6,902 bases of DNA, from positions 1 to 6,902 of IMG/VR virus record IMGVR_UViG_3300024432_000267. The stretch is one strand, 5' to 3'. Position 1 is the first letter of the stretch. The number at the start of each line of letters is the position of its first letter. Of this stretch, positions 1-6,902 are shown piece by piece. Under the pieces are notes generated by a model. It had not been told where the DNA came from. It saw only the letters and a list, made by a program, of their open reading frames with translations, and did no database searches. The position numbers were made by a program, and so were the translations under genes.

Positions 1-201
1 TTATTCACTTTTATTCTTTATAGTTAAAAATAAATAAATATTAAATGTAAATACTAAAAAAGATATTAAATTTAATATAACAAAATAAATATTATATATA
101 ATTAACCAAAATATAATATTTAAAAAATTATAATAAGATATTATACTAAATATAATTAAATATAATATTATAATAAAAGGATAATTTTTCTTTTTTATCA
201 T
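1..201 (-). CDS. Small hydrophobic membrane protein (66 aa), hypothetical
   Basis: The ATG overlaps the methyltransferase stop (TAATG). Basic N-terminus, 2-3 hydrophobic stretches and a basic tail. The DNA is only ~8% GC (16/201), so the composition is low-complexity. Confidence 0.55.
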   Translation of the reverse strand: MIKKKNYPFIIILYLIIFSIISYYNFLNIIFWLIIYNIYFVILNLISFLVFTFNIYLFLTIKNKSE

Positions 202-737
202 TATTTAACCAAAATTATTTTTATACATTGACATGGAAAGATTCTTAAAAAAGTTCTTTCATAACTATTTTGTTTTTGATAAGATTTATTTATTTTATTA
301 TATAATAATCTTAAAAATGTTTTTAATATAGGAATTTTAGATTGTTCAATTTCAAGTCTAATATATATTTTTGAAAAGAAATTTATATTTCTTTCATACG
401 CAAACTTACCTTTATCTATAAAATAATAAAATGTATTACTTGAAAATTGATTTATATGTGTTGGCTCAGCATAATTACTTCTTGAAGTAAAATGTGGTAT
501 TCTAATTCTTAATATACCATTCTTTTTTAAGATTCTGTATAATTCATTCATTAATGGAAAATAATTAATATGCTCTAAAATATCCTTACATAAAATATAA
601 TCAAAATAATTATCATTAAAAGGTAAAGGTAATTTATTTAAATTATGAATAACATTTACGCCTTTTTTAAATATTATATCTAAATTTATCCAATTCTTTC
701 TAATATCGTTTCCACAACCTAAATTAAGTTTAAGCAT
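201..737 (-). CDS. Class I SAM-dependent methyltransferase (Methyltransf_11-like, the type common in glycan-modification loci)
   Basis: 178 aa. Motif I LNLGCG, then WINLD, LPLPFNDNYFDYI, ILEHI, ELYRILKKNG and IPH...EPTH. No DPPY/NPPY or PCQ-type catalytic motif in the position expected of a DNA methyltransferase. Confidence 0.9.
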   Translation of the reverse strand: MLKLNLGCGNDIRKNWINLDIIFKKGVNVIHNLNKLPLPFNDNYFDYILCKDILEHINYFPLMNELYRILKKNGILRIRIPHFTSRSNYAEPTHINQFSSNTFYYFIDKGKFAYERNINFFSKIYIRLEIEQSKIPILKTFLRLLYNKINKSYQKQNSYERTFLRIFPCQCIKIILVK

Positions 738-1222: not shown

Positions 1223-1387
1223 TTAAGGATAAATAATTTTTATTATATAAATTAATAATTGTACTTCTCTTTCATTTAGTCTTAAACTTATCCATTTATT
1301 TATAGCTTTAAGATTAATAAATATTCTTAATCCTTTACCTTTATATTTTTCAATTTTTAATCTTTTACTTATTTTAATTGTTATCAA
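1223..1387 (-). CDS. Small basic hypothetical protein (54 aa), not in the ORF track
   Basis: The open frame fills the ATPase-to-next-gene gap: (MITIK)ISKRLKIEKYKGKGLRIFINLKAINKWISLRLNEREVQLLIYIIKIIYP*. Start is TTG at 1387 (AGGA upstream) or ATA at 1372; stop TAA at 1225-1223. Confidence 0.55.
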   Translation of the reverse strand: MITIKISKRLKIEKYKGKGLRIFINLKAINKWISLRLNEREVQLLIYIIKIIYP

Positions 1388-2087
1388 TATTAATCAATCC
1401 TTTTAGATATATATATATAAATTTTTCATAGCCAATTTCAAAACCATTTAGAAGTAAGGATGTTTTAATAGAATCATGTGTTATAACCTTTAACATAGGA
1501 TTTATAATTTTGGAAATTTCTTTAATTTTTTTTAACATTGCTTTAGGATTATCTTTTAAAATATTGAATTCTAATCTACTTCTTTTTTGCGGTTCTATGA
1601 TTTCATAAGTATCATAAAGTTTAAAATACTTTTCGGCTTTTTTATAAGGAATCATAAAACTCTTTTCTGTATTAGTATCAATATCTCTATAAAGATAATA
1701 AAAATCATCTTTTTTAAAATTAATTCTTGTTTGACATTCTATTATTATATTAGCCAAATGTCGTGCTCTTTTATCCATACTTGAAAACATTTGAGCTGTT
1801 AAATAAATGTCTAAGTGTCTTTTTCTTTTTTGATAAATAAGATAACTTGTTAATAGATTTAAAGCATTGCCAGAAGTTCTTGATTCTAACCAAGTGTATG
1901 CTTCATCTAAAAAAATATTTCCTTCTTTAAGTTTATCCATATTTAATAAATCATTTATAGTGAAAGGAATATAATTATCAAGTTCAAGTTTATAATTACT
2001 ATATATATTTTTACTAAATTTAGTACCATAAAAAAGTAATAAAAAACTTTTACCACTTCCATTATTACCTAATAAAAAGATTAACAT
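1374..2087 (-). CDS. Zot/pI-like P-loop ATPase, putative virion morphogenesis/extrusion ATPase
   Basis: 237 aa. Walker A GNNGSGKS directly after the first beta strand, then IYSNY, Walker B IFLDEA, QKRKRHLDIYLTAQ (RK...hhhTxQ), MDKRAR (DxxxR) and LYDT. These motifs and their order are typical of the Zot/pI family. No TM segment. Confidence 0.88.
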   Translation of the reverse strand: MLIFLLGNNGSGKSFLLLFYGTKFSKNIYSNYKLELDNYIPFTINDLLNMDKLKEGNIFLDEAYTWLESRTSGNALNLLTSYLIYQKRKRHLDIYLTAQMFSSMDKRARHLANIIIECQTRINFKKDDFYYLYRDIDTNTEKSFMIPYKKAEKYFKLYDTYEIIEPQKRSRLEFNILKDNPKAMLKKIKEISKIINPMLKVITHDSIKTSLLLNGFEIGYEKFIYIYLKGLINIDNN

Positions 2088-2848: not shown

Positions 2849-3085
2849 TTATTTATAGATTTCTAAGCTTTTAATTATAAAAATTGATAATTGAAATAAT
2901 ATAAAAAATAATGAAAAGTATGGAATAAATGGTAAGCTAATTATTGCTATTGACATAAATCCTATTATTAATGAAAATAAAAACAAAATTAGAGTAGGAA
3001 GGAATTTTTCTATTTTCTGATATAAATATAACATTAAAATAATTAATGATAACATTATTAAAATAACAGCAAACATAAAACTCAT
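2849..3085 (-). CDS. Small 3-TM membrane protein, paralog B of a tandem pair
   Basis: 78 aa from the ATG, with 30/69 identities to paralog A by hand alignment. The frame stays open upstream to 3145, so the start could be ATT at 3139 (MPANPFPECTCEAQAIILMSF...). Confidence 0.8.
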   Translation of the reverse strand: MSFMFAVILIMLSLIILMLYLYQKIEKFLPTLILFLFSLIIGFMSIAIISLPFIPYFSLFFILFQLSIFIIKSLEIYK

Positions 3086-3145: not shown

Positions 3146-3409
3146 TCATCTCTTAAATACTTTAATTGTTTTTACTATTAAAAATAATAATTGAGTTAAG
3201 ATAAAGAATGTAGAAGTATAAGGATTAAAAGGAATATAATTTAAAGATAATGTACTTATACCTAATATAAGAGAAATTAAGAAAATAAATAAAACAAATA
3301 TCCAAATCTTTATTATTCTATATACAAATATCATAGTAATTATCAAACTAAGAAATATGACTATTATTATAATAGGTTTTAAAATATCATTCATACTTAA
3401 TAAATCCAT
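3146..3409 (-). CDS. Small 3-TM membrane protein, paralog A of a tandem pair
   Basis: 87 aa. ATG preceded by GGAGTAGGA. Aligns without gaps to the next ORF (LSLIIxM, FLxSLIxG, PFxPYxSxFFILxQL). Confidence 0.8.
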   Translation of the reverse strand: MDLLSMNDILKPIIIIVIFLSLIITMIFVYRIIKIWIFVLFIFLISLILGISTLSLNYIPFNPYTSTFFILTQLLFLIVKTIKVFKR

Positions 3410-4050: not shown

Positions 4051-6447
4051 TTAATCAAAACCACTTTTTTTATATTGTATAAATATTCCGCAACCATAAC
4101 ATAATAACATTATAAAGAATAATTCAAAAGGAATTAATAAAGCAACATAACAAATAATACTCATTAATATAAGTATAGGAATAACAATTTCCTTTTTTCT
4201 ATAAACAGAGTATATTCCTATTGTCGGAGCAATTATTATAATTAATGGAATCATAATAGCAAGTAAACTAATGATTATAAAATCAGTTTTTCCCGCGATT
4301 CCATAAAGTTTATACTGAAATTGTAATCCAGATATATAACCTTTTCCTATACAATTTGTATAATTATTATTTTCATTATCGAAAATTACAAAATAAAAAC
4401 GACTAAATTCTTTACCACGTTGTAATAATGTATTGATTGTTGTTTCATAAGTTTTTAAATAAAAGCGGTCATTTGGTGGTTGAAAATAACTCATATCTAT
4501 ATAAGCACTTCCAATAGTAGAAGATAACTCTCTACATTTAAAATTAATAATCATATAATCTGATGAAATATGCCTTATAAAATCAAAATAAAACATCATA
4601 TATTCTGATGTATCATTTTGAGTTATATCAAAATGATAATTTAATCTATTTGAATTGTCTACATAATAATAACTCTTATTGTTTAAATTATGATAATAAT
4701 ATTGAATTGTTATTACATGACTAAAAACATTATCAATATATTTGTTTAATTTAACACGTTCTATTAAAAGAGATAAAGATTTACTTAAATTAAAATTTGA
4801 TTGAATAATTAAAAATAAATAAGGTTTCTCAATTATACGCTCATCATCATGGAAATTATAGCAAAAACTATTATTATCAAATTCATTAAGTATTTCATTA
4901 GAGTATAATCCTTCTATTTTTCCAAAAGCAATTATTTTTATTGTTTGATTATAAGCATTAACCGAAAATACATTATGATGATTAAGATTCCAATTATCTA
5001 TTAATTCATAACTTAAATAACCATATTCTCTACACATAGAAATATTATATTGATATATTCCTATATAGTTTAATCTTAAATGATAATAATCTGTATTTGA
5101 AGTAGGATCATAACTAAAAAAGTCAATTCGATTTATACCTTTTAAATTACTTATTAAAGGAAAAGAATAAGTAGTAGTATAATCATCAGTTCTATACCAA
5201 GATAAATTAACATTGAAATTATATATATACAAATTAAATTCAAGAACTCTATTAGCATCAAGACCATGAATACTTACTAAATCTTGATAAGAACTTCCAT
5301 CATAATACTGTAAATCTGTATCTTGATTAGTTTGAGTATCAAATCTTAATCTTATTATTTCAGTATTATTTAAACTATAAATTTTAAAAAGAGTATAAGA
5401 ATTTATCTCATTCATATTAGTAATTTGAAATCCTAATGTAATATTAAATTTATCTTGAGTTAATCCTAATGATTGATTATATATACCCGTATCAGAACCA
5501 TCAAGACTACTATGAATAGTTATTCCATTTATGTTTTTTGTTTTGTTAGCTGTAAAATCTGGCGTATCTGGAAATACATCATAATTATATTGACTATAAC
5601 GTATCCAGAAATCTACTTCTGGAAATCCAAGTTGAGCATAAGGATTACCATTATCATTTAAATTAAATTCATATTTATCTTTTGTAAGAATATTAGAATC
5701 TACTTCTTGAATATTTGGATATTTATTATCATCAATAGTATAATTAGTTGACCAAGAATATCCAATAGCATCTAAACATAAACTATAAACTTCTGTAGAA
5801 GCAACAAGATAATCTACTCTATTAATCTCAATATCATTAGTATAAAAATTATAATTTCCTTCATTATAATTATTTATATATACATCAAAAGTATCTGTAA
5901 TACAATCAAAACTTAATTTAAGATGATACCATTGATTATTTACGGGAATTGTATCTAATATAAATGGATTAGCACCGTTATATATTCTAAATATATTAGC
6001 TACACTATTAAATATTACGCATTGAGTTGCTCCATTCATAAGTCTAATACTAATAGATTGAGATACATCGCTTATAGAAAACCATAATTCTACAATTCCC
6101 GATACTTGAGAACCTTCATAAAATATTTGTTCACATTGAGCGTCATTTGAATTTATAACACTTAGATTAAGAATAGTTTGATGTTTATTAAAATAAGATT
6201 GAACTGAAGTATTAGCGGGAGATACGCTTAAATCATTCCAACCAATAGGAAAACCAGAATCATTAATAAAACTATATGTTCCATTATAATCACCCGTAAT
6301 GATATTATTATGTCTTAAATTCATTTTAGATTTATTTACAGAATCAACAAGACTATCTTTTTCGAAGTCATAACGTAAAATATCTGATGATGTAGCATTA
6401 ACCTTAGGAATTAAAATAATTCCTATTAGAAATGAAGTAATAACCAA
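4051..6447 (-). CDS. Large membrane-anchored surface glycoprotein, putative receptor-binding adhesin/spike with LamG/concanavalin A-like beta-sandwich domains
   Basis: 798 aa from the TTG start; the true start is probably an ATT near 6483-6486. Signal peptide ends in V-N-A. The ectodomain is rich in N/Y/S/T and beta-like, with LamG-like motifs (SGIVELWF; NNQWYHLKLSFD...FDVYIN). About 19 N-x-S/T sequons counted by eye. Three C-terminal hydrophobic segments and a KK-containing tail. Confidence 0.75.
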   Translation of the reverse strand: MVITSFLIGIILIPKVNATSSDILRYDFEKDSLVDSVNKSKMNLRHNNIITGDYNGTYSFINDSGFPIGWNDLSVSPANTSVQSYFNKHQTILNLSVINSNDAQCEQIFYEGSQVSGIVELWFSISDVSQSISIRLMNGATQCVIFNSVANIFRIYNGANPFILDTIPVNNQWYHLKLSFDCITDTFDVYINNYNEGNYNFYTNDIEINRVDYLVASTEVYSLCLDAIGYSWSTNYTIDDNKYPNIQEVDSNILTKDKYEFNLNDNGNPYAQLGFPEVDFWIRYSQYNYDVFPDTPDFTANKTKNINGITIHSSLDGSDTGIYNQSLGLTQDKFNITLGFQITNMNEINSYTLFKIYSLNNTEIIRLRFDTQTNQDTDLQYYDGSSYQDLVSIHGLDANRVLEFNLYIYNFNVNLSWYRTDDYTTTYSFPLISNLKGINRIDFFSYDPTSNTDYYHLRLNYIGIYQYNISMCREYGYLSYELIDNWNLNHHNVFSVNAYNQTIKIIAFGKIEGLYSNEILNEFDNNSFCYNFHDDERIIEKPYLFLIIQSNFNLSKSLSLLIERVKLNKYIDNVFSHVITIQYYYHNLNNKSYYYVDNSNRLNYHFDITQNDTSEYMMFYFDFIRHISSDYMIINFKCRELSSTIGSAYIDMSYFQPPNDRFYLKTYETTINTLLQRGKEFSRFYFVIFDNENNNYTNCIGKGYISGLQFQYKLYGIAGKTDFIIISLLAIMIPLIIIIAPTIGIYSVYRKKEIVIPILILMSIICYVALLIPFELFFIMLLCYGCGIFIQYKKSGFD

Positions 6448-6476: not shown

Positions 6477-6617
6477 TTAAAATAATAATTTACACCAAAT
6501 TGATATAATTATAAATATAGAAGTTGTAATAAGACATGAAATTCCAGATAAAAGATTATTAGACATTTTAAGTAATTTCTTATCTAATTCTAATCTCTCT
6601 TGTTCATTTTCAGTCAT
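6477..6617 (-). CDS. Small membrane protein (46 aa), charged N-terminus and one C-terminal TM helix
   Basis: MTENEQERLELDKKLLKMSNNLLSGISCLITTSIFIIISIWCKLLF. The ATG at 6617 is preceded by SD-like AAGGT. The track's start at 6665 only adds a translation of the T-tract. Confidence 0.6.
   Translation of the reverse strand: MTENEQERLELDKKLLKMSNNLLSGISCLITTSIFIIISIWCKLLF
6493..6496 (-). promoter_or_regulatory. SD-like GGTG upstream of the proposed ATT start of the adhesin gene
   Basis: Minus strand TTTGGTGTAAATTATTATTTTAAAG. GGTG lies 6 nt before ATT(6486) and 9 nt before ATT(6483), both in frame with the 798-aa ORF. Confidence 0.4.
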
Positions 6618-6630
6618 AAATATTAACCTT

Positions 6631-6656
6631 AAAAATAAAAAAATAAAGAATAAAAG
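6631..6656 (-). terminator. Oligo-T tract after the capsid gene, candidate archaeal-type partial terminator
   Basis: Minus strand CTTTTATTCTTTATTTTTTTATTTTT begins ~10 nt after the capsid stop and contains a T7 run with no hairpin. This is one of the few non-coding-looking gaps in the array. Confidence 0.45.
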
Positions 6657-6665
6657 ATTAAACAT

Positions 6666-6902
6666 TCAATCGCTTATTCTTGGTAAAAAATACATGGTAA
6701 TACTGATTACTGCCAAAATTGGCAATAATACAGTAAGCAAAGTCAAAACCGCTGGATCGCATACATCCGCTAAAGTTTGATTGTCAGCATTAATAATAAC
6801 ATCACCAGCTCCAGAGATTAATCCAATCGCAAGTGGTAAAATTGTTGCGATAACAATTAGACTAATTGCGATAAGAATTACTTGCTTAACATTAGCTCCC
6901 AT
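6666..6902 (-). CDS. Putative major capsid protein, spindle-shaped-virus type (two hydrophobic helices forming a hairpin)
   Basis: 78 aa. Helix 1 VILIAISLIVIATILPLAIGLI, a polar loop with an N-Q-T sequon, helix 2 AVLTLLTVLLPILAVISITMYFL, then a short charged tail (PRISD). The length, the Pro late in helix 1 (ILP), the loop sequon and the TLLxxxxP pattern recall mature SSV1 VP1. It is the first gene of the array and is GC-rich for this window (hand count 83/237, ~35%). The ATG is at the window edge, so an upstream extension cannot be excluded. Confidence 0.72.
   Translation of the reverse strand: MGANVKQVILIAISLIVIATILPLAIGLISGAGDVIINADNQTLADVCDPAVLTLLTVLLPILAVISITMYFLPRISD

Follow-up and report, generated by a model that had tools for sequence, protein, structure and literature searches.

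The window analysed here, 6,902 nucleotides (nt) that form the whole of the IMG/VR record IMGVR_UViG_3300024432_000267, has a GC content of ~21%, carries all of its genes on the minus strand and contains, at positions 4051 to 6447, a gene for an adhesin of 798 amino acids (aa). The window lies at 100% identity within the Joint Genome Institute (JGI) contig Ga0209977_10002196 (locus L002, 8,760 nt), and another contig (L003) also carries its sequence. Ga0209977_10002196 was described in 'Viruses of Asgard archaea' as a partial wyrdvirus genome without the replication module (Medvedeva et al., bioRxiv 10.1101/2021.07.29.453957). We propose that the adhesin is probably the receptor-binding protein of this wyrdvirus, and that its exchangeable lectin head, a concanavalin A (ConA)-like domain here called D1, is shared with a family of Lokiarchaeial surface proteins.

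The adhesin gene and its virus

The reference for comparison was Lokiarchaeota virus WyrdV1 (GenBank MZ666939.1), for which Ca. Lokiarchaeota archaeon 6Rcc_78 is given as the host. In pairwise matches, the open reading frames (ORFs) of the window were orthologous to the major capsid proteins (MCPs), the adhesin, four small middle genes and the ATPase of WyrdV1, and the two genomes have in common the gene order MCP, small ORF, adhesin, conserved block and pI-like AAA+ ATPase. The His1-like MCP, the order of the morphogenetic genes and the listing by the authors who described the group all place the window among the wyrdviruses; it is the morphogenetic module of a member of this group of spindle-shaped viruses, which is assigned to Lokiarchaeia. 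The original prediction, made from the letters of the window, had taken the lectin-like domain of the adhesin as the main clue to the identity of the host, a role that falls away with a contig already published as a wyrdvirus and orthologous gene by gene to WyrdV1. The virus, its host assignment and the label 'carbohydrate-binding adhesin' were all in print before this work, and the published host assignment and virus classification are unchanged by our results. In addition, we rejected the label 'provirus' that IMG/VR gives to the record. The parent contig has no tRNA gene, integrase or recognisable host genes in its flanks, the flanking ORFs of this 8.76-kb contig have no Pfam match and their GC content is ~21% as in the rest; the label is therefore unsupported, and the authors themselves regard the contig as part of a virus genome. 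The parent contigs showed no terminal repeats.

The adhesin gene starts with TTG at 6447 and has no in-frame ATG upstream. Its product (P0001; P0002, P0005, P0006, P0010 and others are its relatives) has an ectodomain of ~715 aa with 19 N-glycosylation sequons, and ~17 metagenomic relatives of ~800 aa each were found, none of them annotated. The gene and its parts are as follows:

4051..6447, minus strand: adhesin, 798 aa, comprising signal peptide, D1, D2, D3 and a C-terminal membrane anchor; orthologue of the WyrdV1 'adhesin, carbohydrate-binding protein'
6280..6447, minus strand: aa 1-56, signal peptide (aa 1 to ~19) and conserved leader ending in NLRHNNIIT; the 5' flank of the D1 cassette, with 82-86% nt identity to P0006
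5725..6279, minus strand: D1, aa 57-241, the putative distal ConA-like domain; hypervariable, apparently swapped cassette of a Lokiarchaeal surface-protein domain family
5680..5724, minus strand: conserved linker, aa 242-256, NKYPNIxxVDSNIL; bounds the cassette on its 3' side, and close relatives become similar again here
5041..5679, minus strand: D2, aa 257-469, the second predicted ConA-like domain; a diverged duplicate of D1, found only on wyrdvirus-like contigs
4243..5040, minus strand: D3, aa 470-735, conserved virus-specific ectodomain
4054..4242, minus strand: aa 736-798, with two or three hydrophobic helices; conserved more than any other segment (84-92% identity)

The C-terminal helices (aa 736-798) presumably anchor the adhesin in the virion envelope or in the MCP lattice. 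D3 showed no relation to the profiles of D1 and D2, the single match of 9 columns being a mere overlap of cut points; against PDB sequences it had no match, and its ESM-Atlas feature scores (0.78) lay within the noise.

Duplication, fold and variation of the N-terminal domains

The original prediction placed two tandem, related LamG-like domains at aa 53-241 and 258-465 of the adhesin (positions 5053-6291, that is, aa 53-465). When the two halves of the adhesin were compared with each other by BLASTP, the match was not significant (E 0.2). Profiles of D1 (aa 20-250) and D2 (aa 245-478), each built from 16 family members, aligned collinearly over 170 columns in hhalign with an E value of 5.3e-6 and a probability of 85.8%. 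This alignment paired TYSF with KYEF, IGW with VDFW, FRIYNG with LQYYDG, EINRVDY with GINRIDF and LCLDAIG with LRLNYIG, which are exactly the motif pairs that had been listed beforehand. AlphaFold2 models of aa 20-250 and aa 245-478 were both all-beta with a mean pLDDT of 80.3 and were confident over aa 57-241 and aa 257-469, so that alignment and models together confirmed the tandem domains with boundaries near these positions. Furthermore, both N-terminal domains of the WyrdV1 adhesin match the D1 profile (1e-36 and 3.5e-23), as does the second domain of the L068 adhesin. D1 and D2 therefore arose by duplication, and D2 has since diverged in the window's clade.

Foldseek searches with both models returned hundreds of ConA-like lectins, carbohydrate-binding modules (CBMs), GH16 and PL7 enzymes, calreticulin and clostridial-toxin Hc domains. 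In VIA-align comparisons, the best match of the D1 model was residues 416-614 of PDB 5mqr (Z 23.5, root mean square deviation 1.9 Å over 168 residues, 17% identity), and the same residues were the best match of the D2 model (Z 18.9, 2.3 Å over 175 residues); sialidase CBMs, L-type lectins, GH16 and CBM66 came next. The 5mqr domain (~416-614 of Bacteroides thetaiotaomicron BT_1020, PF22585) differs from D1 and D2 in being a bacterial accessory domain of a glycoside hydrolase, and P0001 has no sequence-level membership in its family; one cellular relative of D1 does pass the cut-off of PF22585, Sialidase-like_CBM (28.8 versus 27 bits). Taken together, the models show D1 and D2 as predicted two-sheet jelly-roll sandwiches of the ConA-like lectin/glucanase superfamily. 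The proposed check by AlphaFold and Foldseek thus found the same ConA-like fold and the same best PDB domain for both segments, although the name 'LamG' itself did not hold. Against the Laminin_G_3 cut-off (PF13385, 27.6 bits), P0016 reached 21.1 and the cellular protein of L015 reached 26.9 bits, both below it, and only the distant P0020 passed (35.1 bits); 'ConA-like' is the safer name, since the adhesin reaches no Pfam LamG threshold. All viral copies of D1 have F60, H89, E120, W173, D226, Y236 and N241, and 96-100% of the cellular copies described below agree at each of these positions; G117, W122, H175 and W232 are highly conserved (82-100%) in both sets.

Close relatives of the adhesin differ from it mainly in D1, where identity can fall to 23-27% against 72-86% in the rest of the protein. 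The aa identity between P0001 and P0006 was 79% in the leader, 24% in D1, 71% in D2, 72% in D3 and 86% in the anchor; for P0001 and P0002 the corresponding values were 83%, 42%, 86%, 75% and 92%. At the nt level, P0001 and P0006 were 82-86% identical up to aa 60, 30-50% identical over aa 61-232 and 70-94% identical beyond, a profile that puts the breakpoints at the conserved flanks NLRHNNIIT and NKYPNI..VDSNIL, roughly positions 5728-6279 of the window. The opposite pattern was found in some distant pairs, in which D1 was more alike than the remainder (46% versus 33% for P0001 and P0010). These comparisons collectively show D1 as a cassette that apparently recombines and is replaced between conserved flanks among related viruses.

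The adhesins also vary in layout. The WyrdV1 adhesin (QYW08118.1; L093, 5278-8199) is an orthologue with 26.9% identity over 98% of the window's adhesin and likewise has N-terminal ConA-like domains followed by D3 and a C-terminal anchor. It differs in its length of 973 aa, with an extra segment in addition to its two D1-type domains and D3, and in its second domain, which is of D1 type without a match to the D2 profile, whereas the window's clade has a separate D2 type. In L066 (703-2505) the adhesin consists of D2 and D3 only and lacks D1, and in L067 (2735-4984) it has a different, partly masked N-terminal part. The D2 and D3 profiles had no match in the cellular loci, and in ~400 Asgard genomes they matched only on short contigs (7.3-7.8 kb) with the wyrdvirus gene order; two further wyrdvirus-like contigs came from a DNA search, and six Asgard metagenome-assembled genomes (MAGs) in total contain such contigs.

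D1 in Lokiarchaeia and the proposed role of the adhesin

To find D1 outside viruses, we scanned one genome per species from 185,579 species with a D1 alignment, using a pattern plus tblastn. The scan returned 57 loci, 45 of which were Asgard: 36 named Promethearchaeota (the NCBI name now replacing Ca. Lokiarchaeota), four from other Asgard phyla and five labelled 'uncultured archaeon' in genomes that GTDB places in an Asgard phylum. The taxonomic breakdown called for by the original prediction is thus mostly Asgard and chiefly Lokiarchaeota. In a profile search (E <= 1e-10), D1 was present in 108 of 400 Asgard-phylum genomes, while it was absent from all 390 controls, which were other genomes sampled within the phylum to which a Bathyarchaeia MAG belongs. 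By hmmsearch, the fetched loci contained 165 D1 copies in 68 ORFs, or 160 copies in 63 ORFs without the viral loci L001-L005, with per-domain E values of 1e-30 to 1e-52 over profile positions ~35-226. The number of copies per ORF reached eight; larger proteins typically had three to eight, and many ORFs had only one or two. The lengths of these ORFs ran from ~380 aa to above 4,000 aa in the fetched loci and, in whole genomes, up to 20,619 aa (G209:C13). D1 modules lie in Asgard open frames as long as 11,600 to 20,600 aa in G209:C13, G197:C3, G189:C47, G243:C74, G240:C48 and G159:C163, which makes these surface proteins exceptionally large for archaea.

The consensus of 138 cellular D1 copies reads GYYPATYGFEND..GTIExW..WYHxRIDFEC..DAIGYSWDPxYxIGDN, and the signature common to viral and cellular copies is YxATYxFE..GTIExW..WYHxxIDFxC..DAIGYSWxxxYxIGDN. 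The motif string that the original prediction gave for extracellular proteins of Lokiarchaeia is reproduced by this consensus. The cellular proteins have signal-like N-termini, and their C-termini carry transmembrane anchors, some with a P[GSA][FY] motif, or cytoplasmic zinc ribbons; matches to Loki-CTERM were sub-threshold (17.5 and 15.4 bits against a cut-off of 19.9). These features fit surface proteins. From its profile matches, D1 belongs to a domain family that is tandemly repeated in giant membrane-anchored surface proteins of Lokiarchaeia. The giant repeat proteins of L006, L015, L016, L036 and L039 share the D1 family with the adhesin, at up to 57% identity to a viral D1, but differ in being cellular, in having one to eight D1 copies each, in their Loki-CTERM-like/transmembrane or zinc-ribbon tails and in lacking D2 and D3.

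The closest relation between a viral and a cellular copy was found in P0005 and P0006, which come from the sediment metagenome that also yielded L003. On a 99-kb contig of Promethearchaeota YT_039, an ORF of at least 4,197 aa has one D1 copy to which theirs is 57% identical (E 1e-76); the D1 of P0001 is 29% identical to the same copy and 27% identical to the D1 of P0005. The copies of P0005, P0006 and YT_039 cluster with 98-99% SH-aLRT support, and in the unconstrained tree the viral pair falls among the cellular copies. These sequence relationships give good support to an exchange, in either direction and in one or more events, between the virus and the gene pool of Lokiarchaeia. The earlier proposal held that virus and Asgard host share the domain or that the virus took it from the host; sharing and exchange are thus borne out, and capture from the host would be one of the two possible directions.

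We propose the following mechanism. A signal peptide would direct the adhesin to secretion, and the two or three helices at its C-terminus would hold it in the virion. From this anchor outwards, D3 would form a conserved virus-specific stalk, D2 a conserved ConA-like domain and D1 the distal lectin head. D1 may bind a glycan of the host surface, possibly the ligand of the host's own D1 modules, and other wyrdviruses would supply its replacement copies, with at least one obtained by exchange with a cellular gene, so that swapping of the cassette could retarget the virus. Receptor binding is suggested by the architecture, the fold matches, the recombination of the most variable segment between conserved flanks and the annotation of WyrdV1; from these we infer carbohydrate binding, its ligand, the position at the virion tip and the direction of transfer. 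The putative sugar site consists only of the conserved set H89/E120/D226/N241 and aromatic residues, common to viral and cellular copies. A more far-reaching version is possible but rather doubtful: the wyrdvirus adhesins and the Lokiarchaeial giant surface proteins would draw on one pool of lectin cassettes exchanged both ways, D1 would mimic a module that binds the cell's own or its partners' glycans, swapping would be the main route of host-range change, and the viral methyltransferase (see below) could modify the same glycan, for example in superinfection exclusion.

Several results weigh against the proposed reading. A ConA-like fold is no proof of lectin activity, and the lectin role of D1 is one that the models suggest. 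P0001 had no match in Pfam at E <= 1, and PHROGs and NCBIfam gave nothing useful. The GC content at third codon positions of D1 equals the viral background, and neither this nor the overall GC content shows a foreign signature relative to the rest of the gene. In an approximately unbiased (AU) test, the grouping of all viral D1 copies into one clade was not rejected (p 0.219). The 46 rows tested left out three that were long or of odd composition as well as a randomly chosen share of the cellular copies, and the group had been defined with the tree already in view; the tree alone is therefore no proof of several independent captures. A link through clustered regularly interspaced short palindromic repeats (CRISPR), proposed as a further check, was also not obtained: BLAST of the window against the 400 Asgard genomes gave only short AT-rich or genic matches, and none of the ten best was inside a repeat array, in a low-sensitivity search that scored two candidates per genome. 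The binning of whole wyrdvirus-like contigs in Asgard MAGs is weak evidence of a host, given their short length of 7.3-7.8 kb. Finally, the remainder of the 57 loci comprises two archaeal MAGs of 0.8 Mb, single Bathyarchaeia, Thermoplasmata and Dehalococcoidales MAGs, one Patescibacteria MAG and weak partial matches. The two small archaeal MAGs (G404 and G405, loci L009 and L012, ~0.8 Mb each) carry three and ten D1-type copies, so the module is not exclusive to Asgard archaea; they could be small-genome episymbionts or contain mis-binned contigs. The locus binned as Patescibacteria (L013, JANBVM010000006.1) is a 37-kb contig with a GC content of 30.6% that encodes a protein of 1,749 aa in which three D1 copies match strongly (E 1e-42), and it may be a mis-binned Asgard contig.

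The occurrence of D1-type copies in these few non-Asgard MAGs, and the ubiquity of the ConA-like fold, would suit D1 being a generic, widespread ConA-like/LamG domain of sediment microbes that says nothing specific about virus and host. We give this very little credence, because the matches are at the level of the family rather than of the fold, with the per-domain E values and the signature motif given above, because D1 is found in over a hundred of the Asgard genomes and in none of the controls from another archaeal phylum, and because one viral D1 is so close to a Lokiarchaeal copy. The other question that the fold raises is whether one jelly roll breaks down the glycan coat of the host as a GH16- or PL7-like glycanase or lyase, which would make the adhesin a depolymerase instead of a lectin. 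Depolymerases are common among phage receptor-binding proteins, and the structural matches include GH16 glucanases and PL7 alginate lyases, with Z values of 14-16 for D1 and a place in the top Foldseek rows for D2. However, the best match of both domains by a clear margin is the 5mqr domain, which belongs to neither family, and it is followed by sialidase-associated domains of Akkermansia GH181 sialidases and of the V. cholerae sialidase. The invariant residues of D2 are aromatic residues and Asn, with no conserved acid or His pair, the H89/E120/D226/N241 set of D1 also occurs in host tandem repeats that do not look enzymatic, and no ExDxxE-type motif was seen in the adhesin sequence. An enzymatic role is thus unlikely, since the best matches appear to be non-catalytic modules and D2 lacks conserved residues of catalytic type.

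It is similarly improbable that D1 passed from virus to cell, with the cellular copies descending from viral adhesin heads (for example, of integrated wyrdviruses) and serving as decoys or in superinfection exclusion. The AU result leaves room for a single viral clade, in which case the L036 copy would fall inside viral diversity, and the composition of D1 gives no direction. Nevertheless, the cellular copies are far more numerous and diverse, with the 138 of the consensus, the 108 positive genomes and the arrays of up to eight, the P0005/P0006 pair sits among cellular copies when the tree is free, and some wyrdvirus adhesins have no D1. We therefore retain as the probable reading a receptor-binding wyrdvirus adhesin with an exchangeable D1 head.

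Large membrane-anchored glycoproteins at the pointed end of the virion have been described for fuselloviruses and halspiviruses (bioRxiv 10.1101/2021.07.29.453957). The wyrdvirus adhesin resembles them as a large membrane-anchored glycoprotein encoded beside a small hydrophobic MCP but has no sequence similarity to them, and a search of 50,697 records of phages and archaeal viruses matched WyrdV1 alone. Modular evolution is a feature of phage receptor-binding proteins whose CBMs can be exchanged. In the Dit protein of Lactobacillus phage J-1, which serves host recognition, the distal end likewise carries a ConA-like/CBM jelly roll, CBM2 (PDB 5ly8, Z 13.9), although this belongs to the baseplate of a tailed phage and is not homologous in sequence. 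Our literature searches, which covered the wyrdvirus paper as a preprint (the journal version may say more), found no prior account of the cellular D1 module or of domain sharing between virus and host. As far as we found, the two-domain ConA-like architecture with a diverged duplicate, the membership of D1 in a Lokiarchaeal surface-repeat family and the evidence for cassette swapping appear to be new.

Host recognition by viruses of Asgard archaea is almost wholly uncharted, and the surface coat of Lokiarchaeia is poorly defined in molecular terms. Here, a lectin-like module of ~185 aa would be both the variable tip of a published Lokiarchaeal virus adhesin and a building block of giant Lokiarchaeal surface proteins. 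The D1 module could serve as a marker for assigning uncultured spindle-shaped viruses to Lokiarchaeial hosts, and a tagged D1 might be used to probe for the cognate surface glycan in the few Lokiarchaeal cultures. The adhesin would also illustrate how a non-tailed archaeal virus can evolve its host range by exchanging a cassette.

Other genes of the window

The remaining features of the window are as follows:

6666..6902, minus strand: His1-like MCP of 78 aa with two hydrophobic segments; shares 51-54% identity with each of the two annotated MCPs of WyrdV1
6477-6665, minus strand: small ORF between MCP and adhesin, 46 aa in the JGI call and 62 aa from the first ATG; conserved in L005
2087..4048, minus strand: conserved wyrdvirus morphogenetic block, with pairwise matches to the WyrdV1 middle genes
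1374..2087, minus strand: pI/Zot-like AAA+ morphogenesis ATPase, 237 aa; 44% identical to the WyrdV1 ATPase (E 1e-69)
201..737, minus strand: methyltransferase, 178 aa; 63% aa and ~71% nt identity to a gene in the Asgard MAG contig G206:C48

Within the conserved block, two adjacent small membrane proteins of 87 aa (3146-3409, minus strand) and 78 aa (2849-3085, minus strand) are paralogues and match the same single proteins in L005 and L068; they are a tandem duplication within the conserved morphogenetic block. The assignment of the ATPase is backed by matches to Pfam Zot and PHROG pI, and the protein has no transmembrane domain. The window and L068, otherwise diverged, have in their ATPase genes a 46-nt island of 91% nt identity (window 1873-1918, L068 1767-1812), with 38% aa identity overall. 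The methyltransferase gene of G206:C48 is flanked by GT2 and GT4 glycosyltransferase genes on a contig with a GC content of 24.6%, and a second homologue, at 54% identity, was found in G208:C338; as judged from these relatives, the viral methyltransferase points to a glycan-modifying gene shared with low-GC Asgard hosts.

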